Positions 1 through 55,408 of a DNA stretch of 56,240 bases are shown here, piece by piece. Below the pieces are notes generated by a model. It worked only from the letters and a program-made list of their open reading frames with translations. It was not told the origin of the DNA and made no database searches. The position numbers and the translations under genes were made by a program. Origin of the DNA: Octopus sinensis (Eukaryota); assembly GCF_006345805.1 (NCBI RefSeq), contig NW_021833907.1:1-56240 (forward strand). The letters are read 5' to 3'. The number at the start of each line of letters is the position of its first letter. Within the stretch, counting starts at the first letter, position 1.

Positions 1-549
1 TGGTGAGAGATTATTTATTTCATATCGCTTCATTGTCACAAGAAGTTGAATGATAATATCGAAACACGAAGGAGAATATTGAAATAAGAAATGGAGCAGG
101 ATGTAAAAATATAAAATAAAGGAATAATATAGTCACATTTCACACATAACTACACTTATAAATGAACATACACATATACTTCAGCTAAAAATATTTGATG
201 CAAACATGTAAACTCACAAACGTTACCATTTCTAATACAAATTCATATCAAAATCATTGAAATTTGGGGAACAAAAATGATTTATTTAGATGCGAATTGA
301 ATCAAAGCAACTACAATAAAGGAACATTATATTCTTCCTATTATTTCAATTTCTCTCTCAAATTCTCTCTCTTTCTTTCACATTGTCTCGCTCTCTCATA
401 TTCTCTTTGCATATTCCTAAATCTTGTTCATTCTACAAATTTGAATTGATTTTGTTCGGGGCAGTCTGAAATGTTATACATTTGTGAGCTTATATTTGAG
501 CATCAATTATTACTTTCGGATAATAGTATCAAGAAACTGAAGAACTTAC

Positions 550-621
550 AATTCTTTTAAATTGGAAAGCCCTTTGAATGTACCGTCTTTGATGGTTGAA
601 ATGTTGTTGGCACCAAGATTT
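550..621 (-). CDS. 72-nt LRR exon (phase 2-2) of a minus-strand LRR-protein gene: NLGANNISTIKDGTFKGLSNLKEL
   Basis: Acceptor ttctttactgctatAG and donor GTAAGT flank exactly 72 nt. The translation fits the extracellular LRR consensus LxxNxIxxIxxxxFxxLxxLxxL. Confidence 0.9.
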
Positions 622-699
622 CTATAGCAGTAAAGAAAGAGTAAAATAGATTATATGGAAAATATTTGTGACACGACATCAAACACTGTGACTTTAGAA

Positions 700-1470
700 T
701 GAAAGGAAGAAAAAGAAGAAAGATAACGAAGAAAAAGAAGAAGTAGAAGGAGGAGGAGGAGAAGAAGAAGAAGAAGAAGAGGAGGAGTAGAAGAAGAAAC
801 TAGAAGAAGGAGAATTGGGCAGGAGGTGGAGGGGGCGGAAGAGAAGAAGAGAAGGTGTGGTGGGGAGGTTAGGAGGGAGGTCCAAGGAATGGATGACTGA
901 GGAGCGGCAGCTGGGGGTAGAAGCAGAAGGAGCAGGAAGAGCATGAGAATGAGAATAAGAGGAATAATTGGCAGAGAATGGAAAAGAGGGAGACCAGTGA
1001 CGAAGCAGAAAGTACAGAGAAGAAAAGAAGAAGAAAAGAAGAAGAGGAAGAGAATGAAAAACAGAAGAAGAATACAATAAGTAGAAAAATAAGAAGAAAA
1101 AGAAGGCTAGAGAAGACAAAAGATGAAGAGTAGAACACGAAGAAAAGTAACAAGAAGAAGAAGAAGATGAAGTAAGAAGAAGAAGAAGAAAAGAAGAAGA
1201 GAAAGAAGACGACGAAGAAGAAGAGGAACATGTAGGAGATGAAGAAGGAAAGAAGAAGACGAAGAAGAGAAGTAGAAGAAAATAGAAGAGAAAGAAGGAA
1301 ATTGAGAAAAAAGGAGGATGAGTAGGACGAAGAAGAGGGGAGGTTGAGGAGGAGAATTGCAATAATAATAAGAAGAAGAGAAAAAGGAGGAGAAGGAGTG
1401 GAGGAGGAGGCTGAAAAGATAATTACAAGAAGAAGAACAAAACAACAACAACAACAATAACAAAAAAAAT
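700..1470. repeat. Degenerate (GAA/GGA)n purine-rich microsatellite, intronic
   Basis: Directly visible low-complexity tract. It accounts for the spurious poly-F/S/L/E ORFs. Confidence 0.95.
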
Positions 1471-1805
1471 TATCTCGGTGGAAGTGTGGATAAATAACCA
1501 CACGGCACCACAGAATCAAACGAGAACAATGTGTAAGAAAATAGTAGCTTAAACCTTTATATTAATAGTGCAGATACATACATACATATGAACATACACA
1601 TATATTATTTAAGGAATACATTTTATGCAGACAATTATCAACTGACAGTCATTGAATGTTCACACTCAATCAAATAAATATAACACGAATATGAGAACTG
1701 AATATGATACAGTAATAGAGAGTGAGGAAAACATGGAATAGGGATATTAAATTTAAAGACATAGTATATTCCTCATGTATAAACGAAAACATTGAAAGAA
1801 CTTAC

Positions 1806-1877
1806 AATTTCTCTAAGCTGTGAAGGCCTTGAAACATCTCTTTTTCAATCCTTGAATTTTTATTGTAGGAAAGATCT
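1806..1877 (-). CDS. 72-nt LRR exon (phase 2-2): DLSYNKNSRIEKEMFQGLHSLEKL
   Basis: Acceptor ttcctgcttcAG, donor GTAAGT, 72 nt, LRR consensus in the same phase as the other exons. Confidence 0.88.
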
Positions 1878-1974
1878 CTGAAGCAGGAAACAATATTGGT
1901 TAGATTGACATAGTGTAAATTGCGATAACATATTCAATATTGTTCTTTATGAAAAGGGACAAAATTATTGGAAA

Positions 1975-2530
1975 ATAATACGAGAAGAAGAGGAACAAGA
2001 AAGAGATTGAGGAGAAGAAGAAGAAGAAGAAGAAGGAGAGGAGGGAGAAGGAGAAAGGAAGAAGTCAAGGAGGAAGAGAAGGGGTGAGAAGAAGTAGAAG
2101 AAGGAGGAGTTGGAGGAGCAGGAGGAGGAGGAGGAGGAGGGGAGGTGAAGAAGGATGAGAACAGGGAAGGACAAGGAGATGCAGGAGGGGGAGGAAAATA
2201 GGAGGAGGTGCAGAGGGTAGAGTATAAGAAGATATAGAAGATTAAAAAGTGGAGGAAGAAAAGAAAAAGAAGGAGGAGAAGGGAAAAGACAAAAATAGGT
2301 GGAGGCGGAGGAGGAGGAGGAAGGGGAAGATAAAGAAGAAGACAAAGGGGAAGGAGGAGGAGGAAGGAGAAGTAGAAGAAAAAGAAGGAGGAGAAGGAGG
2401 AGGAGGAGAAGTAGGAGTAGAAGAAGAAGAAGAAGAACATGTAGAAGAAGAAGAAGGTGAAGAAGAAGAAAAAGAAGTAGAAGAAGAAGAAGAAGTAGAA
2501 GAAGAAGTAGAAGAAGAAGAAGAAGAAGAT
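1975..2530. repeat. Degenerate (GAA/GGA)n purine-rich microsatellite, intronic
   Basis: Directly visible. Confidence 0.95.
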
Positions 2531-2895
2531 GACACTTTCAAAATCATGGTGTTCAAGAAGACGAAACTGAAATTGTTCTTAAAATATCAGGAAATAATTC
2601 AAGGACAGATTGAAAAATTTTGGGCGAGAAGACATGGCTGGAAAATCAGGAAATATACGGAATCAGAAATCAACATATTCAAATACACTCATACGCATTC
2701 TTATATTCATAGTATCAACGACGGAATGCGGTATGCACACTCACATCACACATATTCCCACTCACACTTGTGGAAATATGGTGAGAGAGATTATTTATTT
2801 CATATCGCTTCATTGTCACAAGAATATTAGAAAACACACGCTTACAAGAAATATATCAGCAGTTTAATTGTATCAGGCCAAATATTCCAGCTTAC

Positions 2896-2982
2896 AAGTA
2901 CAGTAAGTATTTCAGGTTTACAGATAGAATGTATGTGACTATATTATTCGAATATATATTTTCCGCTTCCACTTCAGTTGCT
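2896..2982 (-). CDS. Possible atypical 87-nt LRR-like exon (phase 2-2): ATEVEAENIYSNNIVTYILSVNLKYLLYL
   Basis: Donor TT|GTAAGC in the same phase as the other exons, acceptor tttatgtaatAG, open frame, LxxNxIxxI...LxxLxxL-like pattern. The length is non-canonical. Confidence 0.4.
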
Positions 2983-3527
2983 CTATTACATAAATAACGT
3001 GAAGTGAATGACAAAATTCGAAGTTGAATGATAATATCGAAACACGAAGGAGAATATTGAAATAAGAAATGGAGGAGGATGTAAAATATAAAATAAAGGA
3101 ATGATATAGTCACATTTCACACAGAACTACACTTATATATGAACATACACATATACTTCAGCTAAAAATATTTGATGCAAACATGTAAACTCACAAACGT
3201 TACCATTTCTAATACAAATTCATATCAAAATCATTGAAATTTGGGGAACAAAAATGAGTTATTGAGATGCGAATTGAAACAAAGCAACTACAATAAAGGA
3301 ACATTATATTTTTCCTATTATTTCACTTTCTCTCTCAAATTCTCTCTCTTTCTTTCACATTGTCTCGCTCTCTCATATTCTCTTTTTATCTCCCTAAATC
3401 TTGTTCATTCTACAAATTCGAATTGATTTTGTTTGGTGCAGTCTGAAATTTTATACATTTGTGAGCTTATATATCAGCATCAATTATTACTTTCGGAAAA
3501 TAGTATCAAGAAACTGAACGAACTTAC

Positions 3528-3598
3528 AATCCTTTAAATTCGAAAGCCCCGTGAATGCACCTTCTTTGATGGTTGCAATGTTGTTCCATTGCAGATAT
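3528..3598 (-). CDS. LRR exon (71 nt as written; probably 72 with a homopolymer error): YLQWNNIATIKEGAFTGLSNLK(x)L
   Basis: Same acceptor and donor as its paralog at 550-621. One base is missing in the AAAG/GAA run near the 3' end. Confidence 0.85.
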
Positions 3599-4015
3599 CT
3601 ATAGCAGTAAAGAAAGAGTAAAATAGATTATATGGAAAATATTTGTGATACGATATCAAACACTGTGACTTCAGAATGAAAGGAAGAAAAAGAAGAAAGA
3701 TAACGAAGAAGAAAAAGAAGAAGAAAGATAACGAAGAAGAAGAAGAAGAAGAAGAAGAAGAAGAAGAAGCAGAAGGAGAAGAAAAAGAAGAAGCCAGAGG
3801 AGAAGAATATCTTAACGTGGAGCCGTTTCATGTTTATTTCCTACTTGACTTGCACAACCTCGAGTATCCGCTTCGCCTCTCTATGTACCAACACACACAT
3901 CCACACACATCCACACACATACACGCACATATACGCACATACACACATATATGCTCAGAAATATACACACATATATGCTCAGAAATATACACACATATGT
4001 ATATCTACCTCTGGG

Positions 4016-7111: not shown

Positions 7112-7302
7112 AAATATTCAACATTCGTCGGAATTGGTTGTGGAATTGATAGTAAATTGCGACCTACACAATTTATTCTCGTTGTAAGTGAATTGCAAGT
7201 ACATATCTTGCATATATCTGAATCAGCTTGAGTCTCCAAAAACAATATCGTACACAGTATCAACACAAGAGACCGTCTATATGATACTACGTGGTGAAAC
7301 AT
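7112..7302 (-). CDS. First coding exon of the LRR gene: signal peptide + LRRNT cap
   Basis: MFHHVVSYRRSLVLILCTILFLETQA (signal-like), then DSDICKICTCNSLTTRINCVGRNLLSIPQPIPTNVEYL (CxxCxC...C..RNL.SIP..IP LRRNT). Phase-2 donor TT|GTAAGT at 7111. A polypyrimidine+CAG acceptor at 7323 implies an upstream 5'UTR exon. Confidence 0.9.
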
Positions 7303-7853
7303 ATTGCCAGGCGTAGATTTATCTGTAAAAGAAGAAAATAGGAAATGTCAGAGATTTCAATGTTATTAACTTCAAATTGCAGATTCTCTGAAGGAACTAA
7401 AATTCACCCCTGTTCCACATGACAAATATTTTTTGTTTTCATGATTGGATATTTAAAGCTAAAAATTAAATTTCGATAAATTAGTGTGAAGAAATTTATA
7501 AAAATATTATAGCTTTAACGCGTAATAATATCAAAGAAAACACCAAACTCACACACACAAACACAAACGCACTCCTACACACATCTGTAACCATACTCGG
7601 AGGGGGGTCTAATATATATATATACAAAACTAGCGAACCATGAGTTTCGTAGACCCTAAATACGCAGTGGTTGTAAACCTGGTTGGGTCGTTAAATCCGA
7701 TGGGACCCCACAAGCAACTGTATTGTATCAAAGGATTTTTCCTGTACCCCAGTTTTAGAAGCGTTCATACAAAGTTTTTCCTTAAATAAACTATCATGAT
7801 TTCATTTTACTTACTTTTTTTTACTGAAAACAAGAATAAAGCATGAACGTAAA

Positions 7854-12477: not shown

Positions 12478-13580
12478 CATATATATAATATGTATATATT
12501 ATATATGTATATATATATATATAAAGAACTTTTTTCGGTTTCTGTCTACCTAATCCACTCGTAAGGCTTTGGTCGGCCTTAGGCTATAGTAGAAGAGACT
12601 TTCCCAAATTGCCATGCAGTGAACTGAACCTGGAACTATCTGCTTGCAAAACATGATTCTTACCACGCAGCCACGCCTATGCATGTGTGTTTATGTATAA
12701 GTCTATATATAGGATGAACAGGACAAACAAATATTTAAATAATAATTCTGACGTGCATGTAACAATGTTATGGTTGCTTGGAACCAAATGCTCACCGACA
12801 AATGATTGTCAGGAACAACATTATTCTATTAAGTTGCATAGTTATAGAATGATAGAGAGACAGGGAAAAATAAATCATATATACATGTGTGTGTAGATAC
12901 AAATGTTAAATCTTAAAAGAAAAGTAACAAAAATTTATTTACCTTTATAAAGCCGACTCCAAATATTACTTCAGTTTCAAATTTTTTTACAGAAATTAAA
13001 AGACTTATCCACTTATCTGAATATTCTATTGCCTCATATAATTTTTTTGTCTCACCTTCCAGCTTCTATCCGAAATGCATACTGAATGAAATATCCTGTT
13101 GTAATAATTCTCTATATTTTTTAAACGAGAGTGGCAGTATTTTCCCTTGATGTATGTGATTGGCTGAAATACTTTAATATCCGGAAAATAAATCCATATT
13201 CCAGCTAGTCACCATTCCTACACGTCAAGTGTTGAAATGGTCGCTGTGCAATATGAGATGAATTGGTCTGCGCACAATACACCACTCGTCCCAGGATCTG
13301 AAATCATGACCTTAATCAAGATTTCATGTGTCCTCGACTTCTAAAATATTACCAAAACTTTATTTTTCATATATCCTGGCAACACCCAGAGAATATTCTT
13401 ATGTACTTGACACATTTCTAAAACAAACGCCATTGTTTTAGAGGCGTTTCGGTCATGATCATCACGTCGATTTACTTACATCGTATTGTGTGTTCTATTC
13501 TTCCGTGGTTAAGACGGTAGGGTGTGAGACAGTAGAATATCATTGTCTCAAATGCTTACGATAGGGCTGATAGCGCAAAT

Positions 13581-16643: not shown

Positions 16644-19467
16644 TCATTTAAAATATTTTAAAGTCTTCAATTTAGCGTGGACACAAACGTGACCTAGTTC
16701 GATATGGTTATTCAATAAGTTTCTATGTTTACTATGCTTTAGAATTTCGTACGTCTCCATGGAGCATAGTTGACAACCAACCCTACTATTTTTATACGGA
16801 ATTGCTCTCCTAACTATTTCCCAATTAAGGGTAATAATTTATTATTATTTTTGAGTTCTCAGATTTTGTTTGAAAGTGTGTGGGTACAAGCTTTATGACG
16901 TAATTTAAAAGTCGAGATGTGATTTCTAACCCTGGCTAAAAAATTAATTGTACAGCCAATGTAAAAATATTTGTTATTCTCCGTGGATATGGTACATTTA
17001 TAGATTACATTATTTTCCTACATAGACCAGGTGCCGGGCATTTTGATTTTATTCTACACTTACACACAGGAGGAACAACTTCAGGCCTTGGATTATTCCT
17101 GGGTAGATGTTTAAGGTTCATATTATTTTGATTATCATTTCTATAGTTGGTGCTGATATCTAAAGTATTGTTATTATTTATTGATCCTTCTGTTTCATCA
17201 TTTAGGTGTAAAGTCCTACCAAGATTCTTATATATTCGTAATGTTATTATTATGTTAGTCTTTTTATCCAACTGTATATTATTGTTATAGATATCACTGA
17301 TATTTTCATTCTCCTTATTTTCTCCATTAGCCTTATTTCTATTATTTCTATTATTAACAATATTACTTCTATTAATATCGGCATTGTTATTATTACTATT
17401 AATGTTAATGTTATTAGTCATTCTGTGGTTACTAATTTCACCATGTTTTGATAGTTCCTATTGTTGTTTTTATTGTTGGTAGTATTATTGTTATTGCTAT
17501 TGTATTCATTCTGATATTATTATTTTTATTTCTATCTTTCCTGGCTAGTTTAATTTTGTTATTATTAATTTTAGCTATTAAAGTGGACATATTTGGGAGG
17601 GTTGAATAAGAAATCCTAACTGTTTTCCTAGAATAATTCTATGATATCTATGAGAGATAGGGAAATTTTTTCCAGAATCACTTTGAATTTGTTCTGTATA
17701 TCCGATTGTATCGCACAGTTGAAAGGAATATTCAGCCATAATATATCTTTTTTATAAAATTTAGGGTTCGTAGAATTACTACTATTCATCTCACCGGAGT
17801 TATTGTATTATTACCATTATTTTTATTTTTATTTGTGTGCATCTTAGGTTTATCTACTTCAATCTTATCCGAGTTACCTATGTTCTGGTCAATGCTTCTA
17901 TTTGAATTGTTGGGCCTGTACTCTAGATTAGCGTTTACCGTTAATTTAATTCTACTTTTATTTCGGGCTTGGTCTTTTTTGCTGCTTACGTGATTACTGA
18001 TAACTTCATTATTAGGAATACGTGAGTTCTCCTTATCAACGAATGTAATCTTTTGGTTGTATCCAGCCTTAGTTAACGCCGCATTATAATGCTCAGAATG
18101 GGAGTTAAATATATCCTTATTGGATGATAATTTTGAAATTCTTAATGAATATTTCTTACTAAAGATTCTATTATATTTGGGGGATGATTATATTTATTTA
18201 CGTAATTCGTGACTTCGCCTTCCTTCTAAATGGGTAATGTAGCTTGGAGTTAAGGTCTAGGTAATATCTAGGAAATTAGCTATTTTAGTGCCCGGTTCAT
18301 ACGTTATACTGAGGTTGAAATCCTTAAAGAACTTATTAATTTTCTTTCTAATCCTTTCTATAACAGATTTATTATTACTAGGGATAACAAACAGAGCATC
18401 ATCCCTATATAGACCCCCCTGTATTTCTGGGATATCCTTGCTTATGCATTTTAATAGATATGCGCCTACTAGGTTGGTTACCTCAGCCGAATCACTGGAA
18501 CCCATTGGTATATCAAAAAAATTTGGTGTATCTGCTCTAGTCCATAATTTATCTTCAAATTCAATAAATGTCTTCCTAGCTAGTAGCACAATATTGATTT
18601 CTTCTCTAGTTATGAGGGAGCGATTCATGGCAAATATTAGTGATTTGTTGAGTAAGATAGGGGAACTGCTAGAGTAATAACTATTAATATCGAACTGAAT
18701 AAAGGACAGACTACTAGTATTAGTTAGAGAGTTAAACCATTTTAGAACTTCGTCGGTACTTAGCCATAGGTTTAAGGGGAGAAGAGGGGTTATTTGGGGT
18801 AGAACAGTATCCAGGATAGATTTACTAAGTCGGCCAATGTCCGACTTAGTTGGACAGATCAGCCTTACCGAAGGGTTATCCAAGAAGTCCTTTTTGTGGT
18901 CTTTAAGGTTGATCCTGGGTTCACAGGGTTTAAGTGGCTCCGTTCTATCTGTTAAATTTAGTTTCTCCATGATCTCTTTCATTTCCATGTTTACTTTTTT
19001 CAAATGGTTCTTAGTTGTAATTTTATATTGGAGTTTAGTTCTTTCCTAATTAATTTGCTATAAATATCGTAATCAACTCTATACATATACCCGTTTTATC
19101 TGCTGGTACTAGGATTCCATGTTTGCACCGGTTGACTGAATAAAGTTCCTAAGGTGTCTAAGGTGAGGGTATATCTTAACGGGTGTTCATTGAAGCTAAT
19201 ATCATCTATAAGATTCAGCAAGTCTTTCTCAAAGTTCTCCAGGAATGGGTTCTGAGGTGGGCTTTTTCTACTTTTAAAAATTCTTCTAAAATTCTTTTCG
19301 GTATTCATTTCCTGGGTTTCTTCTTCTGTTTGACATCAAAATGGTACGTTTTCCACCTGATTCTTCTAATGAAATCGTTAATCCTATGAATGAGAAGCCA
19401 ATTATATTCATCTATACTATGTAAGGGGATGTCTCTTAGGGGAGAACTCAATGTTTACTTTTTCCAT
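16644..19467 (-). CDS. PLE polyprotein, left copy (RT - CxCx5Cx5C linker - GIY-YIG), ~940 aa once 1-nt indels are corrected
   Basis: Starts MEKVNIEFSP.DIPLHS. RT motifs FIQFDINSYY, FDIPMGSSDSAEVTNLVGAYLL, GLYRDDAL, ANFLDIT. Linker CKCRIKSKCPAPGLC. Endonuclease VIYKCTISTENNKYFYIGCT..RNH..CQLCSMETYEI..HVCVH. Confidence 0.9.
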
Positions 19468-20358
19468 TCTTGTTGAGAAATTAAGTACCAGAAAAACATA
19501 CAGACTGTATGGGAATATATTCAAAGAGCAATAAAGATTCAAGTTATTTTAAAAAAAAATTTACTTGAATATGGTACCTAACTTAGATGCACCAAAAAAC
19601 TATACTGATTTAACAATACAGTAATGTGGGGGGTGATTATAAGCGAGAAAGAAGCAACAAGAATGGATAGGTTTTTTAGTACGATCGTTTCATACAGGAC
19701 AGGTTTTATTAAAAGTTGCAAAGATTACAGCATATAAACGAGTCCCGTACTCATCAGCTAAAATACATGTAAGTTCTCTAGACTCCTAGTGTTTGAGGCT
19801 ATACTCATGAAGTAATGTAGATAATTAAACAGATTTCTAAAGTTCATTAAAGTTCTTTAAAGATGATGTACAGTCTTATCACAGAATTTTAAAAAGTTTT
19901 GATAGCATCACAGAGAAGGTGACCTAATCCATATGAATTTCCATAGATATGATGAGGGATTATATCTCACAGAAGACAAATTTATCCATTGTTAATTACA
20001 ACGAGGTGGGTCTCAATTCCTGCTTATTAGTATTACAGAGAGGGTGAATTAATCCTTTGTATATATGCACAGATTCCAATGGTGTAGATGTAAATTTCCA
20101 GAGAACTGGAGATGAATTTCATATTCACAGGCGATAAATTTTACCATGGTTTGAACAAATGAGGTAGGTATCAATCCTTGTTATATGATTAGGTGTTTGC
20201 CACATTAATCACATTACTGCTATTCACAAGAGGCTGTAGCTATTTAACTCTTAAAGGCTGAAGGGCTACTAGATCGGCCAAGAATAGAGAAGGAATAGAA
20301 GAAAAGAGAGAAAATAATGGAGGGGAGCAAAAAGGGGGGGGGGAAGGGGGACAAAAGA
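19468..20358 (-). repeat. 5' pseudo-LTR and leader of the left PLE copy (also the spacer of the palindrome)
   Basis: Homologous to 15137-15806 (direct) and 24030-24870 (inverted). Runs directly into the ATG at 19467. Confidence 0.9.
19674..19763 (-). ncRNA. Type I hammerhead ribozyme, complete; predicted cleavage after GUA (A = complement of 19680)
   Basis: Stem I UUUUAG/CUAAAA, core CUGAUGA, stem II GUACGGGAC/GUCCUGUAU (9 bp), GAAA, stem III AC-GAUC-GU (palindrome ACGAUCGU), A17. Confidence 0.9.
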
Positions 20359-23186
20359 ATGGAAAAGTAAACATTGAGTTCTCCCCTAAAGACATCCCCT
20401 TACATAGTATAGATGAATATAATTGGCTTCTCTTCATAGGATTAACGATTTCATTAGAAGAATCAGGTGGAAAACGTACCATTTTGATGTCAAACAGAAG
20501 AAGAAACCTCAGGAAATGAATACCGAAAAGAATTTTAGAAGAATTTTTAAAAGTAGAAAAAGCCCACCTCAGAACCCATTCCTGGAGAACTTTGAGAAAG
20601 ACTTGCTGAATCTTATAGATGATATTAGCTTCAATGAACACCCGTTAAGATATAACCCTCACCTTAGACACCTTAGGAACTTTATTCAGTCAACCCGGTG
20701 CAAACATGGAATCCTAGTACCAGCAGATAAAACGGGTAATATGTATAGAGTTGATTACGATATTTATAGCAAATTAATTAGGAAAGAACTAAACTCCAAA
20801 TATAAAATTACAACTAAGAACAATTTGAAAAAAGTAAACATGGAAATGAAAGAGATCATGGAGAAACTAAATTTAACAGATAGAACGGAGCCACTTAAAC
20901 CCTGTGAACCCAGGATCAACCTTAAAGACCACAAAAAGGACTTCTTGGATAACCCTTCGGTAAGGCTGATCTGTCCAACTAAGTCGGACATTGGCCGACT
21001 TAGTAAATCTATCCTGGATACTGTTCTACCCCAATAACCCCTCTTCTCCCCTTAACCTATGGCTAAGTACCGACGAAGTTCTAAATGGTTTAACTCTCTA
21101 ACTAATACTAGTAGTCTGTCCTTTATTCAGTTCGATATTAATAGTTATTACTCTAGCAGTTCCCTATCTTACTCAACAAATCACTAATATTTGCCATGAA
21201 TCGCTCCCTCATAACTAGAGAAGAAATCAATATTGTGCTACTAGCTAGGAAGACATTTATTGAATTGAAGATAAATTATGGACTAGAGCAGATACACCAA
21301 ATTTTTTTGATATACCAATGGGTTCCAGTGATTCGGCTGAGGTAACCAACCTAGTAGGCGCATATCTATTAAAATGCAAAGCAAGGATATCCCAGAAATA
21401 CAGGGGGGTCTATATAGGGATGATGCTCTGTTTGTTATCCCTAGTAATAATATCTGTTATAGAAAGGATTAGAAAGAAAATTAATAAGTTCTTTAAGGAT
21501 TTCAACCTCAGTATAACGTATGAACGGGCACTAAAATAGCTAATTTCCTAGATATTACCCTAGACCTTAACTCCAAGCTACATTACCCATTTAGAAAGGA
21601 AGGCGAAGTCACGAATTACGTAAATAAATTATCAAATCATCCCCCAAATATAATAGAATCTTTAGTAAGAAATATTTCATTAAGAATTTCAAAATTATCA
21701 TCCAATAAGGATATATTTAACTCCCATTCTGAGCATTATAATGCGGCGTTAACTAAGGCTGGATACAACCAAAAGATTACTTCGTTGATAAGGAGAACTC
21801 ACGTATTCCTAATAATGAAGTTATCAGTAATCACGTAAGCAGCAAAAAAGACCAAGCCCGAAATAAAAGTAGAATTAAATTAACGGTAAACGCTAATCTA
21901 GAGTACATGCCCAACAATTCAAATAGAAGCATTGACCAGAACATAGGTAACTCGGATAAGATTGAAGTAGATAAACCTAAGATGCACACAAATAAAAATA
22001 AAAATAATGGTAATAAATACAATAACTCCGGTGAGATGAATAGTAGTAATTCTACGAACCCTAAATTTTAAAAAAAGATATATTATGGCTGAATATTCCT
22101 TTCAACTGTGCGATACAATCGGATATCAGAACAAATTCAAAGTGATTCTGGAAAAAAATTTCCCTATCTCTCATAGATATCATAGAATTATTTCTAGGAA
22201 AACAGTTAGGATTTCTTATTCAACCCTCCCAAATATGTCCACTTTAATAGCTAAAATTAATAATAACAACATTAAACTAGCCAGGAAAGATAGAAATAAA
22301 AATAATAATATCAGAATGAATACCAATAGCAATAACAATAATACTACCACAACAAAAAAACAACAATAGGAACTATCAAAACATAGGTGAAATTAGTAAC
22401 CACAGAATGACTAATAACATTAACATTAATAGTAATAATAACAATGCCGATATTAATAGAAGTAATATTGTTAATATAGAAATAATAGAAATAAGGCTAA
22501 TGGAGAAAATAAGGAGAATGAAAATATCAGTGATATCTATAACAATAATATACAGTTGGATAAAAAGACTAACAATAATAATAACATTACGAATAATATA
22601 AGAAATCTTGGTAGGACTTTACACCTAAATGATGAAACAGAAGGATCAATAAATAATAACAATACTTTAGATATCAGCACCAACTATAGAAATGATAATC
22701 AAAATAATATGAACCTTAAACATCTACCCAGGAATAATCCAAGGCCTGAAGTTGTTCCTCCTGTGTGTAAGTGTAGAATAAAATCAAAATGCCCGGCACC
22801 TGGTCTATGTAGGGAAATAATGTAATCTATAAATGTACCATATCCACGGAGAATAACAAATATTTTTACATTGGCTGTACAATTAATTTTTTAGCCAGAG
22901 TTAGAAATCACATCTCGACTTTTAAATTACGTCATAAAGCTGGTACCACCACACTTTCAAACAAAATCTGGGAACTCAAAAATAATAATAAAAATTATAC
23001 CCTTAATTGGGAAATAGTTAGGAGAGCAATTCCGTATAAAAATAGTAGGGTTGGTTGTCAACTATGCTCCATGGAGACGTACGAAATTCTAAAGCATAGT
23101 AAACATAGAAACTTATTGAATAACCATATCGAACTAGGTCACGTTTGTGTCCACGCTAATTGAAGACTTTAAAATATTTTAAATGA
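20359..23186 (+). CDS. PLE polyprotein, right copy (RT - Zn linker - GIY-YIG), frameshifted as assembled
   Basis: Near-identical inverse of 16644-19467. Its frameshifts mostly lie in homopolymers and differ from those of the left copy, so the consensus appears open. Confidence 0.9.
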
Positions 23187-25650: not shown

Positions 25651-27497
25651 TCACTAATACACAGGTGTGTATAAAAGAATATATTATTAAACATGGTATA
25701 TGACATATGAAGGTGTGACAGCAACCCAGGAATCACTCTTATCTACTAGGCGTTTTACTGAACCAACACCCACTGAATTCTCATGGATCCCCAAAACGAT
25801 CTGAGCGTTACTCCTAAGAGATGTCTCTCGTCAGCTAACGATATGGCGTTGTATCATGTACTGATAGAAAGACTGACGCAGAAAATTACGGAGTTTGGTG
25901 TGGTGATACAAAGTCTGAGAACGAAGCCAAACTTAGGTACATATGTTTGTTTGATTTTTTGTGTTTTACTTAGGGTGTTGTGGTCGACGTTGTTGTTTGC
26001 CCTGATCGTAGTTTTGCACAAAGTTATTCCAACTCTAGCTATCTAATTCTATTGAATCATATAAGATTTTTGTCTCACGTCTCAGCTGCTATCCGAAAAG
26101 CATACACAATGAAGTACCCGTTTGAAATAATTCTCTATTTTTTTTAAAAACGAGAGTGGCAAGTATTTTCCTTGATGTATTTGATTGGCTGAAATTCTTT
26201 AATATCTGGGAAATAAATCTATTTTCCAGCTATTCACCATTCCTACACGACAAGTGCTGAAATGGTGCCTGTGCAACATGAGATGAAGTGTTTGCGCGCA
26301 ATACACCTCCCGTTGCAGGATTTGAAATCACAACCTTGTTATCGAGAGCAGCACCTTTAACCACGATGTTATGTATTCTCGACTTCTATTATATTACCAA
26401 AATGGTATTTTTCATATGTCCAGGCAACACCCAGAGAATATTCTTATCTATTTGACACATTTCTAAAACAAACGCCATTGTTTTTATCGATTATTGGGAT
26501 GGCGATATCTGCTCAAAGACACGGCCTCATCTCTCGAGTTACTAAAATGCAAACCGGACGAATTTCCCTCGTTTCCCAGAATATATTTCAGTTGGTTGTA
26601 AAGGACGCTTGTTGTTCACTGATGACATCCCGTCGATTTACATGTATTGCAATATGTGTTGTGTTCTTTCCGTGGTTAAGACGGTAGGGCGTGAGACAAT
26701 GGAATATCATTTTCCCAAATGCTTACGATAGGGCTGATAGCGCAAATATACAAGTAATGGACATTCATTAGTCCTGAAACCTACATCTACAATCATTATT
26801 GTAATACATCACATGATGTGGATGTTAATTTTCATAGATCTTTCCGATGTATAAGTTCGACCTTACTATCAAGATGAACCATCAATTTATTAAATGACAT
26901 CTTGGACTTCCTTAGAGTCCGTCTACAATACCCACTCACAAGTCTTTGCTCGGACGGAGGCTATAGTAGAAGAAACTTTCCCAGGTTGCCATGCAGCGAA
27001 ACTAAACCTGGATCTAAGTGCTGACGGAGCAAGTTTCTTACCACATAGCCACGCCTATGCATGTGTGTTTATGTATAAGTCTATATATAGGATGAACAGG
27101 ACAAACAAATGTTTAACTAATAGTTTTTACATGCGTGTAACAACGTTATGGTTGCTTGGAAAAGAAAAGTAACAAAAATTGATTTATCTATTCGCGTTCT
27201 GAGTTCTATCCTGTCGAACTCCCATTTGCCTTTCATTTCTCAGAGGTACTGAAGTCCAATTAGTCGACAGTCCACCTTCCCCACAAAACACAACTACTGG
27301 CATTCTACCTAAACCCGAAACCACTTTATAGGTGGCAATCTAGGATTTTAGGCCGACGAATTGCTACGCAGTGTCATATGTAAACATGTATGGTATATAA
27401 AGATGCATGAGGATATATATACATACACAAACACGCACAAATATGTGTGCGTGTATGAGTGTGTGTGCATATGAGTGTGTGTATGTATGTACGTTTG

Positions 27498-27536
<39 letters not shown>

Positions 27537-27624
27537 GAATGTATATGTGAGCGTGTGTCTACATGTATGTGAATACATGCACAAGTGTACGAGGCGAAAC
27601 ATCCAAACAAACACACAAACACAC

Positions 27625-27662
<38 letters not shown>

Positions 27663-28009
27663 GGTATATAAATACTTATATATGTATTCATACGCATTTA
27701 GATATATACACACACATAAGCACACACATATATCAATATGTATACTTTTTCTTTAATTCTTTTACTTGTTGAAGTCATTTGCCTGCGTCCATGCTGGAGC
27801 ACAATATCATAAGCCTTTAAGCCCAATACATTGACATCAGGGATTATTCTTTGTAAGCCAAGTACTTATTTTATTGTCCGCTTTTGCCGAGCCGCAATGT
27901 TAAGGAGGGGGCGTAAAAACCTGCTGTAAGTTATGAAAGGGTAACAAACATAGTCGCGAAGACAGACACACACATACACAAACAAACAAACTCACACACA
28001 CTTATGCAT

Positions 28010-28059
<50 letters not shown>

Positions 28060-31000
28060 ACGAAATTCTTTCGGTATTTTCGTCTACCAAATCCACTCGT
28101 ACGGCTTTGGTCACCCGAGGTTATAGTAGAAGACACTTTCCCAAATTGCCATGCAGTGAAACTGAACCTGGATCTATCTGCTTGCGAACCATCTATCTTA
28201 CCACATAGCCACGCCTATGCATGTGTGTTTATCTATAAGTCTTTATACAGGATGAACAAGACAAACAAATATTAAATAATAATTCTGACGTGCATGTAAC
28301 AATGTTATGGTTGCTTGGAACCAAATGCTCACCGACAAATGATTGTCAGGAACAACATTATTCTATTAAGTTGCATAGTTATAGAATGATAGAGAGAGGG
28401 AAAAATAAATCATATATACATGTGTGTGTAGATACAAATGTTAAATCTTAAAAGAAAAGTAACAAAAATTAATTTACCTTTATAAAGCCGACTCCAAATT
28501 TTACTTCAGTTTCAAATTTTTTTACAGAAATTAAAAATCTTATCCACTTATCTGAATATTCTATTGCCTCATATAAATTTTTTGTCTCACTTTCCAGCTT
28601 CTATCCGAAATGCACACTGAATGAAATATCCTGTTGTAATAATTCTCTATATTTTTTAAACGAGAGTGGCAGTATTTTCCCTTGATGTATGTGATTGGCT
28701 GAAATACTTTAATATCCGGAAAATAAATCCATATTCCAGCTAGTCACCATTCCTACACGTCAAGTGTTGAAATGGTCGCTGTGTAACATAAGATGAAGTG
28801 TTCTGCGCACAATACACCACTCGTCCCAGGATCTGAAATCATGACCTTAATCACGATTTCATGTGTCCTCGACTTCAATTATATTACCAAAATGCTATTT
28901 TTCATATGTCCTGGCAACACCCAGAGAATATTCTTATCTACTTGACGCTTTTCTGAAATAAACGCCATTGTTTTTATCGATTATTGGGATTGCGATATCT
29001 GCTCAAAGACACGACCTCATCTCTCTAGTTACTAAAATGCAAACCCAACCAATTTTCCTCGTTTCCCAGAATATATTTCAGTTGGTTGTAAATTATTCTA
29101 GTTGTTCACTGGCGGAAAGACTATGACCACAGGCGTTTCGGTCATGATCATCCCGTTGATTTATTTACATCGTAATGTGTGTTCTATTCTTTCCGTGGTT
29201 AAGACGGTAGGGTGCGAGACAATGGAATATCATTGTCTCAAATGCTTACGATAGGGCTGATAGCGCAAATGTTCAAGTAATGGACATTCATTAGTCCTGA
29301 AACCTACATCTACAATAATTATTGTATGACATCACATGATGTTAATGTTAATTTTCATAGATCTCTCCGAAATATTAGTCCGGCCTTACTATCAAGATGA
29401 ACCTTCAATTTATTAAATGACATCTAGGACTGAATTATTCTGCTACTAGCAGAAGAATGAAAGTGATATTCTACGTGGTTTTACTCTCCGTGTGTTTTAG
29501 CATATTGTAACTTTCATGTACATGGGTTATCTCAAGTACAACATACCCTCGAATGTTTAGGGGCGTCCAGTTCACCCTGCGTCACTTGCCACAGGTCTCA
29601 CACAGCAGATGCAGGTACTAGAGGGTAAAGACGGTACTGAATCCCTAAGCTGTTCACGTGTGAATCCCCATATCAATTTATTATTATTCCATATACAAAC
29701 AACAGTTTAGATTGTGTGAGTACGTTTGTGTATATATACATATATACATAATTAAGATTTTGCTTACAAACTTTGTCTCCCTTTTCAGCTTCCTTTCAGT
29801 AACCAAAACCATGTCTCAATATTACTATTTCCTGCAACTATCTTTGCCAATCTACCAGGGAAAAACATTCTCTTGTCAGTTAGATAATCTCTCTTATTTT
29901 TTCTGGTTTTAATTTCATTTGGCTTTTTCCTTTCCTCTCTCCTACTGTAACTCTTGCAACTCATAAATTATATTCACTATTATATACATCAACTCTAGCT
30001 AACTCTACGGTACCTTCTGCTGATATTAAACCTCACCCACCTTCGTTATTCTAAGTAAATCTTGCTCTTCGTAATCGAGGCTGAAGTCCTCCATTCATAT
30101 CGAATTCCTTCCTAGTTATTTTGTCAAGATTTGCAAATTGAGATCTTTTCAATCAACAAATCTGCTGAATACAAGTAACCATACTTCCCAAAGTTTTTAC
30201 ACCTTTACTAGATTTAGAACACTAAGCTTTCCCTTTATTAGCTTCTTTTCCCTTCCGATGTACTCCTTATCTATTTCCATTGTTAGGACACTCTCAGATT
30301 CTAATACTCCGAAGCACTTATGATTCTCTGCCTTCAGTGATTTTACTCTCTTGCTATCTGACATTCACTGCTGACTATCTGTCCACTTTTTATGACTTAT
30401 GTGGCGCACATATCTATGCCAAATTCTTATATCTTTGCTGAAGAATCTTACAATTCTTGTTCCTATAGATATACACACTTACGTGTGAATATATATAGGA
30501 ATATGCCACTGCATGTATGTGTGTATATGTTAGTGCGTGTATGTATATATGTATGTCTGTATGCATGTGTGCGTATACATTCATCCCTTTAACCCTCAAG
30601 TCAAACACACCCTCACTATATAGACTAATCTCTATATACTCTCATATGTTTCTCATTCGCCCAATAATAGACTCTTCCAAGGCCTTACAAAACTGATTCA
30701 ATTTCTATTCAAAGATGCAACTGATAACTTCCATTATCCTTTGCCAGGGACTTACCTGGAAACTTTACTAACTCTTCGATCACGAAAATACCCAACACAT
30801 TTATCAGAGAATTCCATGGTTTCCCAAAAGACTGGGAACGAATAATATCCTCGATAAAGGATATTATGCATTTCTGCATTTTCTTCTTCTTTCTCAATAA
30901 CGGAATGATTTGCTCAGATGGAATTCTTTACTCAATAACATGCTTAGTTATTCTAGAAACATCTATAAAAGACTTTGCCAATTTCTATAACCACTCTGCA

Positions 31001-35970: not shown

Positions 35971-37871
35971 AAATAATATATATAATATATAATATATATA
36001 TATTCACTAATACACAGGTGTGTATAGAAGAACATATTATTAAACATGGTACATGGCATATGTAGGTGTGACAGCAACCCAGGAATCACTCTTATCTACT
36101 AGGCGTTTTACTGAAGCAACACCCACTGAATTTTCATGGATCCCCAAAACGATCTGAGCGTTACTCCTAAGAGATGCCTCTCGTCAGCTAACGATATGGC
36201 GTTGTATCATGTACTGATAGAAAGACTGACGCAGAAAATTACGGAGTTTGGTGTGGTGATACAAAGTCTGAGAACGAAGCCAACCTTAGGTACATATGTT
36301 TTTTTGATTTTTTCTGTTTTACTTAGGGTGTTGTGGTCGACGTTGTTGTTTGCCCTGATCGTAGTTTTGCACAAAGTCATTCCAACTCTAGCCATCTAAT
36401 TCTATTGAATCATATAAGATTTTTGTCTCACGTTTCAGCTGCTATCCGAAAAGCATACGCAATGAAATACACGTTTGAAATAATTCTCTATTTTTTTTAA
36501 AAACGTGAGTGGCAGTAAATTTCCTTGATGTTTGTGATTGGCTGAAATTCTTTAATATCTGGAAAATAAATCTATTTTCCAACTATTCACCATTCCTACA
36601 CGACAAGTGTTGAAATGGTGTCTGTGCAACATGAGATGAAGTGTTCTGCGCGCAATACACCTCCAGTTGCAGGATTTGAAATCACAACCTTGTTATCGAG
36701 AGCAGCACCTTTAACCACGATGTTATGTATTCTCGACTTCTATTATATTACCAAAATGGTATTTTTCATATGTCCTGGTAACACCCAGAGAATATTCTTA
36801 TCTACTTGACACATTTCTAAAACAAACGCCATTGTTTTTATCGATTATTGGGATGGCGATATCTGCTCAAAGACACGACCTCATCTCTCGAGTTACTAAA
36901 ATGCAAACCCGACGAATTTCCCTCGTTTCCCAGAATATATTTCAGTTGGTTGTAAAGGATGCTTGTTGTTCACTGATGAGAAGACTATAATCAGAGGCGT
37001 TTCCGTCGTGATCATCCCGTCGATTTACATATATTACAATGTGTGTTGTGTTCTTTCGGCTGTTAAGACGGTAGGGTGTGAGACAATGGAATATCATTGT
37101 CTCAAATGCTTACGATAGGGATGATAGTGCAAATATACAAGTAATGGACATTCATTAGTCCTAAAACCTACATCTACAATCATTATTGTAATACATCACA
37201 TGATGTGGATGTTAATTTTCATAGATCTTTCCGATGTATAAGTTCGACCTTTCTATCAAGATGAACCATCAATATATTAAATGACATCTAGGACTTCCTT
37301 AGGGTCCGTCTACAATACCCACTCACAAGTTTTTGCTCGGACCGAGGCTATAGTAGAACGAAACTTTCCCAGGTTCCATGCAGCGAAGCTAAACCTGGAT
37401 CTAGTGCTTACGGAGCAAGTTTCTTACCACATAGCCACGCCTATGCATGTGTGTTTATGTATAAGTCTATATTCCGGATGAACAGGACAAACAAATTTAA
37501 CTAGTTTTTACATGCGTGTAACACGTTATGGTTGCTTGGGAAAAAAGTACAAAATTGATTTATCTATTCGCGTTCTGAGTTCTATCCTGTCGAACTCCCA
37601 TTTGCCTTTCATTTCTCAGAGGTACTGAAGTCCAATTAGTCGACAGTCCACCTTCCCCACAAAACACAACTACTGGCATTGTACCTAAACCCGAAACCAC
37701 TTTATAGGTGGCAATCTAGGATTTTAGGCCGAAGAATTGCTACGCGGTGTCATATGTAATCATGTATGGTATATAAAGATGCATGAGGATATATATACAT
37801 ACACAAACACGCACAAATATGTGTGCGTGTATGAGTGTGTGTGCATATGAGTGTGTGTATGTATGTACGTT

Positions 37872-37905
<34 letters not shown>

Positions 37906-38358
37906 TGTATATGTGAGCGTGTGTCTACATGTATGTGAATACATGCCAAGTGTACGAGGCGAACATCCAAACACACACCAAATACACACACACACACCAC
38001 CACACATATATAATATATATATATATATTATATAAATACTTATATATGTATTCATACGCATTTAGATATATACACACACATAACACACACATATATCAAT
38101 GTGTATACTTTTTCTTTAATTCTTTTACTTGTTGAAGTCATTTGCCTGCGTCCATGCTGGAGCACAATATCATAAGCCTTTAAGCCCAATACATTGACAT
38201 CAGGGATTATTCTTTGTAAGCCAAGTATTTATTTTATTGTCCGCTTTTGCCGAACCGCAATGTAAAAACCTGCTGTAAGTTATGAAAGGTAACAAACATA
38301 GTCGCGAAGACAGACACACACATACACAAACAAACAAACTCACACCACACTTATGCAT

Positions 38359-38424
<66 letters not shown>

Positions 38425-41400: not shown

Positions 41401-44099
41401 GGATTTTAGGACGAAGAATTTCTACGCGGGGTCATATGTAATCATGTATGGTTATATAAAATGCATGAGGATATTATACATACACAAACACGCGCAAAAA
41501 TATGTGTGTGTATGAGTGTGTGTATGTATGTTAGTTCGTATATATATATATATATATATAATATATATATATACATATGTATATATGAATGTATATGTGA
41601 GCGTGTGTCTACATGTGTGTGTGTGAATACATGCACATGAGTACGAGGCAAAACATTCACACACATACATACATATAGGTATATAAATACATATGTATAT
41701 ATTCATACGCATTTATATATATACACAGACATGCGCACACACATATATAAATGTGTATTCTTTTTCTTTAATTCTTTTACGTGTTGAAGTCATTTGCCCG
41801 CGGCCATGCTGGAGTGCCATATCAAAAGCCATTAGGCCCAATAAATTGACATCAGAGATTATTCTTTGTAAGCCAAGTACTTATTTTATTGGCTGCTTTT
41901 GCCGAACCGCAATGTTAAGGAGGGGCCTTAAAAAACCTGCTGTCGAATATGAATGGGTAACAAACATAGTTGCAAAGGCAGAAACACACATACACAAACA
42001 AACAAACTCACACACACACACACAAACACACATATGCTTCAATATATATAGATTTATATATAACGCACTTCTTTCGGTTTCCGTCTACCAAATCCACTCG
42101 TAAGGCTTTGGTCGGTCTGAGGTTATAGTAGAAGACACTTTCCCAAATTGCCATGCAGTGAAACTGAACCTGGAACTATCTGCTTGTGAAGCATGTTTCT
42201 TACCACTCAGCCACGCCTATGCATATGTGTTTATGTAAAAGTCTCTATATAGGATGAACAGGACAAACAAATATTTAAATAATAATTCTGACGTGAATGT
42301 AACAACGTTATGGTTGCTTGGAACCAAAATCTCACCGACAAATGATCGTCAGGAATAACTTAATTGTATTAATTTGCATAGTTATAGAAAGATAGAGAGA
42401 GAGGAAAAAATAAATCATATATACGTGTGTGTGTGTAGATACAAATGTTAAATCTTAAAAGAAAAGTAACAAAAATTGGTTTACCTTTATAGAGCCGGCC
42501 CCAAATATGACTTCGGTTTGAATTTTTGACAGAAATTAAATGTTTATCCACTTATCGGAATATTCTATTGCCTCATATAAGTTTTGGTCTCAACGTTCCA
42601 GGTGCTATCCGAAAAGCATACTGAATGAAATAACCCTGTTGTAATAATTCTCTAATTATTTTTAAAACGAGAGTGGCAGTATTTTTTCTTGATGTATGTG
42701 ATTGGCTGAAATTCTTTAATATCCGGAAAATAAATCCATTTTCCAGCTAGTCACCATTCCTACACGTCGAGTGTTGAAATGGTCGCTGTGCAACATAAGA
42801 TGAATTGTTCTGCGCACAAAACATCACTCGTCCCAGGATCTGAAATCACGACCTTAATCACGATTTCATGTCCTCGACTTCTATTATATTACCAAAACTT
42901 TATTTTTCATATGTCCTGACAACACCCACAGAATATTCTTATCTACTTGTCGCTTTTCTAAAACAAACGCCATAGTTTTTACCGATTATTGGGATGGCGA
43001 TATCTGCTCAAAAATATGACCTCATCGCTCTAGTTACTAAAATGGAAATCCGGCCAATTTTCCTCGTTTCGCAGAATATATTTCAGTTATTTGTAAAGAA
43101 TGCTTGTTGTTCAATGATGACAAGACTATGATCAGAGGCGTTTCGGCCATGATCATGCCGTTGATTTACTTACATCGCAATGTGTGTTGTGTTCTTTCCG
43201 TGGTTAAGACGGTAGGGTGTGGGACAATGGAATATCATTGTCTCAAATGCTTACGATAGGGCTGATAGCGCAAACGTTCAAGTAATGGACAATCATTAGT
43301 CCTGAAACCTACACCTGCAATCATTATTGTAATACATCACATGATGTGGATGTTAATTTTCATAGATCTCTCCGAAATATAAGTCCGACCTTACAATTAA
43401 TTTTTGCTTAGAAACTCTGTCTCCCTTTTCAGCTTCCTTTCAGCAACCATAACCATGTCTCAATATTACTATTTCCTGCAACTATCTTTGCCAATCGACA
43501 TTGCCATACATTCTCTTGTCAGTTAGATTATCTTCCTACTTTTTTTATTGTTTTAATTCATTTGGCTTTTTCTTTCCTATCTCCTACTATAACTCAGGCA
43601 AATCATAAATTTTTTTCATTATTATATATATCAACACTAGCTACTCTACCTACCCTACTTTCTGCTGATATTAAACCGCTTCCACCTTCGTTATTCTACG
43701 TAAGTGCAATCTTGCTCTTCCTAATCGAGGCTGAAGTCCTCTATTCATATTGAATTCCTTCTTAGTTCTTCTGTCTAGATTTGCTAATTCAGATCTTTTC
43801 CAATCAACAAATTCTGCTGAATACCGAAGTAACGACACTTCCCAAAGTTTTTACAACCTTTACTAGATTTAGAACCCTTCGCATTCCCTTCATTAGCTTC
43901 TTCAACCTTCCGATGTACTCCTTAGCTATTTTTTTTTCATTTCCATTGTTAGTACACTCTCAGATTCTAATACTCCGAAGCACTTATGATTCTGTGCCTT
44001 CAGTGATATTACTTTCTTGCTATCTGGCCTTCACTGCTGACTCCTTTTCTGTGTGAATTCATGTTAAAAGTCTCTACATTGGGAATTTGCCTGGTTTTG

Positions 44100-53779: not shown

Positions 53780-53810
<31 letters not shown>

Positions 53811-55367: not shown

Positions 55368-55405
<38 letters not shown>
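55095..55405. repeat. Long degenerate (TA)n microsatellite
   Basis: Directly visible. Confidence 0.95.

Positions 55406-55408
<3 letters not shown>

Follow-up and report, generated by a model that had tools for sequence, protein, structure and literature searches.

Exchange between cassettes and selected diversity at four predicted ligand-facing positions as the probable source of exon divergence in leucine-rich repeat adhesion G-protein coupled receptors of octopus

The DNA considered here, 56,240 nt of Octopus sinensis (RefSeq assembly GCF_006345805.1, contig NW_021833907.1, positions 1 to 56,240 of the forward strand) and called the window in the following, carries on its minus strand a gene for a leucine-rich repeat (LRR) receptor, which has its start codon at 7302 and exits the window past the left edge (position 1). 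This locus raises the question of how two duplicated LRR exons can differ more from each other than the introns that surround them. An initial annotation had answered it with diversifying selection on the ligand-binding face of the receptor and had taken the introns as the yardstick of neutral divergence. The answer that we favor, with a probability of roughly 65%, is that short-tract gene conversion in a concertedly evolving cassette array acts together with selection for diversity at four positions of the repeat, namely x3, x5, x7 and x8 of the motif LxxLxLxxN.

Both exons, 621..550 and 3598..3528, have the boundaries initially assigned to them and lie on the minus strand. They are flanked by identical splice sites, the former reading ctatag/AAATCTTGGTGCCAACAAC...AAAGAATT/gtaagt (acceptor ctatag/A, donor TT/gtaagt; slashes mark exon borders) and the latter ctatag/ATATCTGCAATGGAACAAC...AAAGGATT/gtaagt. 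The earlier count of about 15 differences in 72 nt is right for the substitutions, of which there are 15, but it omits a 1-nt indel, as exon 3598..3528 has 71 nt and not 72; the E-to-D change described as the last one of the exon is an artefact of this overlooked deletion. Instead of two clearly synonymous changes we count three (CTG/CTT, TCG/TCC, AAG/AAA), and the other 12 of the 15 substitutions are nonsynonymous. As had been described, all six bases differ between the codons GGT GCC of exon 621..550 and CAA TGG of exon 3598..3528, and the residue that precedes the L is N in the former and Y in the latter. The introns are far more alike. On the acceptor side (622-733) 3 of 112 nt differ, where ~3/110 had been given, and on the donor side (440-549) 8 substitutions and 1 indel are found in 110 nt once compensating indels are placed, in place of ~8/112. 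Over all alignable intron the difference amounts to 23/613 (3.8%), compared with 15/71 (21%) in the exon (Fisher p=9.6e-7). The two exons were correctly recognized as paralogs, but they are more than a recent local pair, each having positional counterparts in paralogous loci, and a third, diverged LRR exon (1877..1806), missed in the initial annotation, sits between them. This third exon was ruled out as a recent copy of the unit that the pair represents (A-type), to which it shows 66% identity and flanks with mere scraps of similarity; its own conserved introns mark it as a separate, B-type cassette. Counted from the start codon, the three exons are cassettes 1 (3598..3528), 2 (1877..1806) and 3 (621..550).

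A cassette consists of one 24-residue LRR on a 72-nt exon, which begins at x5 of LxxLxLxxN and still includes the first two bases of the L4 codon of the following repeat (phase 1-1), so that the gain, loss or skipping of cassettes leaves the reading frame intact. With these phase 1-1 exons, and with a cassette number and order that vary among paralogs, the initial idea that expanding exon cassettes make up an LRR receptor stands. All three cassettes of the window match LxxLxLxxNxIxxIxxxxFxxLxx, with the exception of an N at I11 in cassette 2, and they share canonical splice sites with the first coding exon. LxxLxLxxN had no match when single reading frames of the window were scanned, because the motif is split over the exon junctions; an exon-aware scan then found the cassettes. 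The first coding exon (7322..7112) codes for a hydrophobic leader, which is a putative signal peptide, and for a putative Cys-rich LRRNT cap (MFHHVVSYRRSL...CKICTCNSLTTRINC...PTNVEYL), ends in phase 1 as all cassettes do and is, by tblastn, 94% identical to protein P0001 and 90% identical to P0003. The spliced product of the window matches the Pfam family LRR_8 (E=8.2e-24) and, weakly, LRRNT (E=0.005, 16.8 bits vs a cutoff of 25.8); visual inspection shows a hydrophobic N-terminus and a CxxCxC...C pattern.

The cassettes were compared with those of the loci L001-L008, of which L001-L004 and L007 are unplaced O. sinensis contigs (VCDQ01005800, VCDQ01006897, VCDQ01007574, VCDQ01000433 and VCDQ01007705, in this order) and L008 is a region of O. 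bimaculoides (CM046629.1:10409675-10474064). The cephalopod origin deduced initially is supported by 96% nucleotide identity across 8.4 kb to VCDQ01005800, which is the best match; the window is identical to none of the loci compared. From the window and L001-L006 (7 loci), 18 A-type and 8 B-type cassettes were collected as DNA with their flanks, and a peptide set comprises 108 unique cassettes, 85 of them A-type, from ~40 annotated proteins of three Octopus species. In both cassette types the variable columns are exon bases 1-13 and 66-71, and mid-exon and introns are nearly constant. The amino-acid entropy of the 18 A-type DNAs reaches 2.82, 2.34, 2.71 and 2.38 bits at x3, x5, x7 and x8, followed by x18, x2 and x10 (1.72, 1.40 and 1.23 bits), and is 0 at the core L, N and F positions and 0 to 0.3 bits at the I positions. 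Among the 85 A-type peptides the same four positions have 3.1-3.5 bits with 14-16 residues each, and no other position exceeds 2.2 bits. Most frequently D, Y, N, G, W, R, E and S are found there, and the 108 cassettes contain 103 distinct four-residue words; B-type cassettes show the same variability pattern. Per-site nucleotide diversity in the hypervariable patch is 0.56-0.81 vs 0.057 in the intron.

In established LRR structures, the x positions of the motif point outward from the concave beta-sheet. The initial claim that change is concentrated on the predicted ligand face holds for x3, x5, x7 and x8 in all of this material, the 18 DNAs as well as the 108 peptides. A single-sequence AlphaFold2 model of P0032 has strands every 24 residues, from x3 or L4 to I14, with a pLDDT of 70-90 in the LRR block; the model is good in this block only and carries no information on side-chain exposure.

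Such a pattern could be the result of a recent tandem duplication after which positive selection drove point substitutions at a high rate, the intron serving as neutral clock. The divergence of exon and intron in the window pair and the 12 nonsynonymous changes among 15 speak for this view, as does an excess of nonsynonymous (dN) over synonymous (dS) divergence at the hypervariable codons. In nine closely related A-type units from the window and L001-L004, dN is 1.27 at the four hypervariable codons, the framework has a dN of 0.055 and a dS of 0.275, and the intron divergence is 0.058, which places the hypervariable codons at ~22 times the intron rate, but at 4.6 times the rate of synonymous sites in these exons. 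For omega (dN/dS) at the hypervariable codons, with dS taken from the framework, bootstrapping gives a 95% interval of 2.9-5.1 for the 18 cassettes and 2.9-8.2 for the nine, and that of the framework is 0.27-0.59 and 0.10-0.31, respectively. A dN/dS above 1 at the x positions across cassettes, which the initial annotation had named as a check, argues for selection there. The polymorphism of the nine units, however, shows that the intron is a poor reference. It has 71/357 segregating sites (55 of the 71 singletons) and a nucleotide diversity (pi) of 0.057, whereas 9/19 framework third positions segregate with a pi of 0.185 (p=0.008 vs intron); the framework first and second positions (6/38, pi 0.049) and the hypervariable positions (12/12, pi 0.567) mark the two extremes. 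An explanation of the excess synonymous change by CpG hypermutability was rejected, as it accounts for at most 2 variable third positions (TCG, ACG) and the others are non-CpG (CTG/CTT, GGA/GGT).

Complete cassette units, taken as the exon with 600 nt or more of intron, resemble each other to 94-97%, no matter whether they come from one gene or from paralogous genes, and 125/190 informative site pairs fail the four-gamete test, with an Rmin of 12 in ~450 nt. A PHI-style test for distance decay of incompatibility gave p=0.87 and is uninformative, because incompatibility is already saturated between adjacent sites. As judged from these alignments, the cassette units are a recombinant mosaic in which the exons carry older variation than the introns. 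With framework third positions ~3 times more diverse than the intron and with the units forming such a mosaic, the use of intron divergence as neutral yardstick has to be given up, and the ~20-fold excess over the intron therefore overstates selection. Selection at the x positions is nevertheless needed, because an exchange that homogenizes the intron 1 base upstream and the framework 10 bases downstream would homogenize the patch as well.

A particular case of patch replacement was found in the O. sinensis contigs L002 and L007, whose sequences agree to 99.4% across 16.8 kb. Their first cassettes differ at 7 sites, all of them in exon bases 2-13 (AGATCTGAACGAG vs ACGTCTTGGCAAC, DLNE to RLGN), and at every one of these sites cassette 1 of L007 has the base found in cassette 2 of its own gene, at a distance of 1.7 kb. 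Since the flanking cassette-1 markers at -22..-17 and +22 are kept, the copied tract must have been 12-38 nt long; one further cassette-2 state is present at -56. Cassette 2 (L002:15914-15986; L007:15929-16001 approx.) has three 1-nt deletions shared by both contigs and has lost its GTAAGT donor. Being common to both contigs, these lesions mark cassette 2 as a genuine pseudo-exon rather than a chance error of the assembly, and it may have served as donor of the L007 cassette-1 patch. The patch words of the window are likewise found elsewhere, as TCTTGGTGaCAAC in L004 and AAATGGAAC in L005, and YLQW and LGAN, which contain the QW and GA of the window, recur in the O. sinensis protein P0026, which was compared at the protein level; YLHW occurs in O. 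vulgaris P0016. The 6/6-base difference in the window pair is best explained by templated short-tract replacement, which is also the simplest account of it.

For point substitution these observations are difficult. It would require a rate ~20 times that of the intron, while framework synonymous and third positions are also 3- to 5-fold above the intron and the units form a recombinant mosaic; a 12-nt patch that was replaced whole between nearly identical contigs, with its donor at hand, and QW and GA words that recur in P0026 point to inherited blocks rather than new mutations. We therefore think that point substitution is an unlikely explanation. The diversifying selection proposed initially is retained as selected diversity at the x positions, but the L002/L007 case indicates that this diversity comes in blocks by templated short-tract replacement and not by accumulated point substitutions.

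It is also conceivable that the introns are under purifying selection, for instance for a splicing control of cassette choice, in which case the exons would merely look fast and no exchange would be needed. In agreement with this, every A- and B-type exon has flanks, ~100 nt on its 5' side and 200 nt or more on its 3' side, that can be aligned across the loci, including the distant L005 and L006. The similarity, however, is uniform along at least 550 nt of intron with variants that are mostly singletons, divergence rises to 0.16 with more distant cassettes and to 0.2-0.76 in an older O. bimaculoides array, and the four-gamete failures require exchange or massive homoplasy, which makes conserved introns a rather improbable alternative. 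The O. bimaculoides array of L008 also served as control. Its paired cassettes are 15-21% divergent in the exon and 20-76% in the introns, which is the usual order, and the reversal therefore belongs to the young or homogenized A/B arrays and not to the method. L008 is a more distant member from a different, older subfamily. It has retained the 72-nt phase-1 layout of one LRR per exon, apart from a single exon of 69 nt, and its old cassettes comprise several types in recurring alternation.

The window copy itself has two irregularities. One base is missing in the x3 codon of exon 3598..3528 (AAG GA- TT vs AAA GAA TT in exon 621..550), nearly all other cassettes have 72 nt, and the matching cassette of P0026 ends in ...KEL, like exon 621..550. 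In the present assembly, splicing to the next exon yields GAT/TAG and hence a stop, so that exon 3598..3528 must be a pseudo-exon unless the assembly is in error here. A cryptic donor 4 nt downstream, which would restore the frame with a 75-nt exon, was considered unlikely, as the GTTCGT site is weak and a core Leu would become Cys-Lys. The second irregularity is an AAT (Asn) at the buried core position I11 in exon 1877..1806, where the 7 other aligned B-type cassette DNAs have ATT or, once, TTT. One could conclude from the immediate TAG after the 71-nt exon, the N at I11 and the clearly broken cassette 2 in both L002 and L007 that the window gene is dead and its exons are drifting. Drift, however, can neither outrun the intron rate nor target four codons, the same four positions are hypervariable throughout the annotated proteins of the three species, and a framework omega of 0.1-0.6 indicates purifying selection. 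We regard pseudogene decay as a very improbable cause of the pattern.

The missing base could also be taken as a sign that assembly or polishing artefacts in a difficult repeat array have produced the patches as well as the indel. All five unplaced O. sinensis contigs (L001-L004 and L007) end at most ~1.4 kb from the last annotated LRR cassette, and homopolymer-type 1-nt indels do occur, of which the 71-nt exon may be one. The clustered changes, on the other hand, are substitutions and not indels, they obey a codon and LRR-position logic, the same words come up in genes and species that were assembled independently (YLQW and LGAN in P0026, YLHW in P0016), and the three cassette-2 deletions are common to L002 and L007; we consider artefacts as source of the pattern quite improbable. 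At those contig ends the protein models of NCBI are truncated and either read into the intron or stop at a broken exon, and the window, too, begins 549 nt beyond cassette 3. The cassette arrays thus probably break the assembly, and family size and cassette numbers are probably underestimated.

Several points nevertheless weigh against our explanation. The 71-nt exon and the Asn at I11 may mean that this gene copy is decaying and perhaps nonfunctional, and its 3' part, including any 7TM domain, lies beyond position 1. The values of dN and dS are pairwise Nei-Gojobori counts with bootstrapping across cassettes, since recombination precludes tree-based site tests; a cassette offers only ~13 synonymous sites, and the pairs compared are non-independent. 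Polishing with mis-mapped short reads can create patchwise differences in repeat arrays, and every unplaced O. sinensis contig studied ends inside the array, which is hence hard to assemble. Finally, the concave-face placement of x3, x5, x7 and x8 is a prediction from general LRR structure and the moderate P0032 model.

In the mechanism that we propose, cassette units would be continually exchanged by gene conversion and unequal crossing-over, the latter perhaps within the (TTC)n tracts that precede the cassettes, and this exchange would keep introns and structural framework homogeneous. New states of the four codons would be introduced mainly as templated patches of 12-38 nt from other cassettes, broken pseudo-exons included, and selection would retain cassettes that differ at the outward-pointing residues of the concave beta-sheet, where omega is ~3-5 against synonymous sites, compared with ~0.2-0.4 in the framework. 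The outcome would be a germline receptor repertoire with one scaffold and many binding surfaces. The tracts in question, (GAA/GGA)n on the forward strand, are found before every cassette and at the same place in all loci; besides the one 5' of cassette 3, the window has like tracts at 1983-2529 and 3683-3793. The duplicated cassette units terminate inside them, and they may be the substrate of an unequal exchange that alters cassette number. A counterpart of the conserved stretch 622-740 precedes every A-type cassette in the 7 loci. A more far-reaching and tentative proposal, to which we give limited credence, is that these receptors form a germline combinatorial repertoire, in which a concave-face patch of ~12 nt is moved by micro gene conversion with pseudo-exons as donors and the symmetric 72-nt cassettes could in addition be selected by alternative splicing. 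If true, this would be an invertebrate system that unites a VLR-like surface diversification, a Dscam- or protocadherin-like cassette logic and the output of a G-protein coupled receptor (GPCR), and in arms and suckers the repertoire could be used for chemotactile sensing or for the recognition of cells.

The kind of receptor to which the window gene belongs becomes evident from its relatives. Searches with the three repeats and then with the 136-aa product led to O. sinensis proteins that share the N-terminal exon; the closest one, P0005, has exon 1 and the A, B, A cassettes as in the window and is 87% identical to the 136-aa product. A search with O. vulgaris P0003 returned more than 40 Octopus proteins, most of which are named 'adhesion G-protein coupled receptor G6-like' by NCBI. 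The layout of this family comprises a signal peptide and LRRNT, A and B cassettes in variable number and order (consensus ..NNIATIKEGAFTGLSNLKxL for A and ..NKISRIEKEMFQGLHNLEKL for B), LRRCT, 1-3 Cys-rich modules, HRM, GPS and 7TM. Pfam matches include LRR_8 and 7tm_2 (E=8e-28) in P0037 and GPS (E=9e-11) in P0025, which has the homologous N-terminal exon and LRRs; HRM matches are weak among the relatives, including P0003, and the precomputed domain matches of P0050 are LRR, 7tm_2 and ADGRA2/3 GAIN. As far as homology allows the assignment, the window gene is a member of an Octopus family whose fuller-length representatives are adhesion GPCRs with LRRs, LRRCT, HRM, GPS and a secretin-type 7TM domain. 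By sequence, the nearest solved LRR structures are those of IGFALS, LGR4, TLR3 and LRIG1. A TIR domain (PF01582) was found in no Octopus relative among the 112 matches; these relatives have GPS, 7tm_2 or GAIN, the C-terminus of the window gene being outside the window. The initial annotation had pointed to VLRs and TLRs as receptors with hypervariable x positions; with HRM, GPS and 7tm_2, these relatives belong to the adhesion GPCRs and not to immune receptors of the VLR or TLR type.

The Cys-rich module of ~90 residues follows LRRCT in P0015, P0031 and P0013 and reads ..CQTCSG..C..VTSCPG.EPVCRFAISMNG.KLKTERSCSTYRKCVEAMRNN..CNKRTN..C.GCCVGHLCNKNDF. It is present in 1-3 tandem copies, and a second part of the ectodomain is therefore also variable in copy number. 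By eye the module gives the impression of a Ly6/uPAR-like domain, an assignment that we dropped, as there is no such Pfam match.

The features of the gene in the window are compiled in Table 1.

Table 1. Coordinates of the LRR-receptor gene features in the window (slashes within splice sites mark exon borders)
Feature	Position	Strand	Details
First coding exon	7112..7322	-	acceptor ttttacag/AT at 7323/7322; ATG 7302..7300; donor TT/gtaagt after 7112
LRR cassette 1, A-type	3528..3598	-	71 nt; peptide YLQWNNIATIKEGAFTGLSNLK(E)L
Hypervariable patch, cassette 1 (codons x5, L6, x7, x8 = TAT CTG CAA TGG)	3586..3597	-	from per-site diversity
LRR cassette 2, B-type	1806..1877	-	72 nt; peptide DLSYNKNSRIEKEMFQGLHSLEKL
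LRR cassette 3, A-type	550..621	-	72 nt; peptide NLGANNISTIKDGTFKGLSNLKEL
Hypervariable patch, cassette 3 (AAT CTT GGT GCC)	609..620	-	from per-site diversity and cassette alignment
Intron 3' of cassette 3	1..549	-	homologous to 2778-3527, ~96% identical from position 48 on (repeat family D20)
Intron 3' of cassette 1	2778..3527	-	partner of 1-549; additional 196 nt at 2825-3020
Conserved intron stretch 5' of cassette 3	622..740	-	3/112 differences from 3599-3715
Conserved intron stretch 5' of cassette 1	3599..3720	-	partner of 622-740
(GAA/GGA)n tract, (TTC/TCC)n on gene strand, 5' of cassette 3	706..1440	.	tandem-repeat rows 706-1297, then read to ~1440

Upstream of the gene the window is rich in repeats. 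Inverted retroelement fragments occupy 17900-22600, where the open reading frames 18257-19003 (-) and 20423-21037 (+) share the peptide ..MEMKEIMEKLNLTDRTEPLKPCEPRINLKDHKKDF.. and one of the two has a weak RVT_1 match (E=0.004, below cutoff). Large dispersed or tandem repeat blocks are located at 12600-13440, 26000-29600, 36400-39900, 40400-43450 and 53000-56240; they belong to families D1-D19, are 60-99% identical with spacings of ~2.5, 10.3 and 13 kb, and have further matches in L001:2400-5100, where they again lie 5' of the gene, in this case the paralogous one. At 50924-52624, a unit of ~475 nt (family D8) is present in four tandem copies with 69-100% identity.

From genus, names and domains, the genes match an octopus-specific expansion of adhesion GPCRs that was described as 'group 3' and is organized in tandem clusters (Ritschard et al. 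2019, PMC6408891): both share the NCBI names, GPS and 7tm_2, some LRRs and the clustering in tandem. Expression of 'group 3' was reported for the axial nerve cord, suckers and skin, and a branch-level omega >1 was found, yet no individual sites under positive selection (PMC6408891). That study was built on the 7TM domain, with LRRs in only 5/22 sequences, and the cassette-exon anatomy, the four hypervariable positions, the homogenized introns and the patch conversion are not part of it (PMC6408891). In our literature search we found no published description of the cassette-exon anatomy, the hypervariable LRR positions, the homogenized introns or the patch exchange in these octopus genes. The ligand-facing sites of this expansion were not known before, and the diversity can now be assigned to four residues of each LRR, all of them on the face predicted to bind, with introns and framework homogenized around them and one apparent templated patch transfer caught in the assembled contigs. 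If it holds, this provides a testable model for how many receptor specificities could be accommodated on one cephalopod scaffold, and it names sites for mutation and ectodomains for ligand screens. It also contains the general warning that flanking introns in repeat arrays are no neutral clock.

Among the better known adhesion GPCRs, ADGRA2 and ADGRA3 (GPR124 and GPR125) resemble the octopus family in their N-terminal LRR block and LRRCT, followed by HRM, GAIN/GPS and 7TM, and several octopus relatives match Pfam PF26588 'ADGRA2/3 GAIN'. In the octopus family, however, no Ig domain was seen, and the Cys-rich module (CQTCSG...CCVGHLCNKNDF, 1-3 copies) follows LRRCT. ADGRA2/3 are single and conserved in vertebrates, whereas the octopus family is large and variable in cassette number.

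With the VLRs of lamprey and hagfish the octopus cassettes have in common a conserved LRR scaffold, hypervariable concave x positions of xxLxLxxN and a short templated copying between cassettes. VLRs are assembled somatically from intron-less donor cassettes that flank an incomplete gene, with the participation of cytidine deaminases (cf. PMC3900441). The octopus cassettes, in contrast, are ordinary spliced exons in order, with AG and GTAAGT sites, in complete germline transcription units. In the assembly data, exchange is seen only between germline copies, with no sign of a somatic process.

The resistance gene clusters of plants, such as the tomato Cf-4/Cf-9 Hcr9 genes, show hypervariable exposed residues in xxLxLxx, an omega >1 and a shuffling of patches among tandem paralogs. 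Their LRR blocks are intron-poor and contained in single exons, whereas the octopus genes have one exon per LRR, homogenized introns and GPCR signaling. The layout of the octopus exons is in turn similar to that of Slit, LRIG and LGR4-6, which have the same 'typical' LRR of 24 residues. In these proteins one LRR is encoded per 72-nt exon, the repeat number is fixed and the binding faces are conserved, and we know of no cassette homogenization or hypervariable patches in them. A parallel for the relation between exon and intron is offered by the major histocompatibility complex (MHC) class I and II genes, where recombination has homogenized the introns, the peptide-binding exons keep old selected diversity, and linked synonymous sites are elevated. 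In the MHC this concerns the alleles of one locus; in octopus it concerns repeats within a gene and between paralogs.

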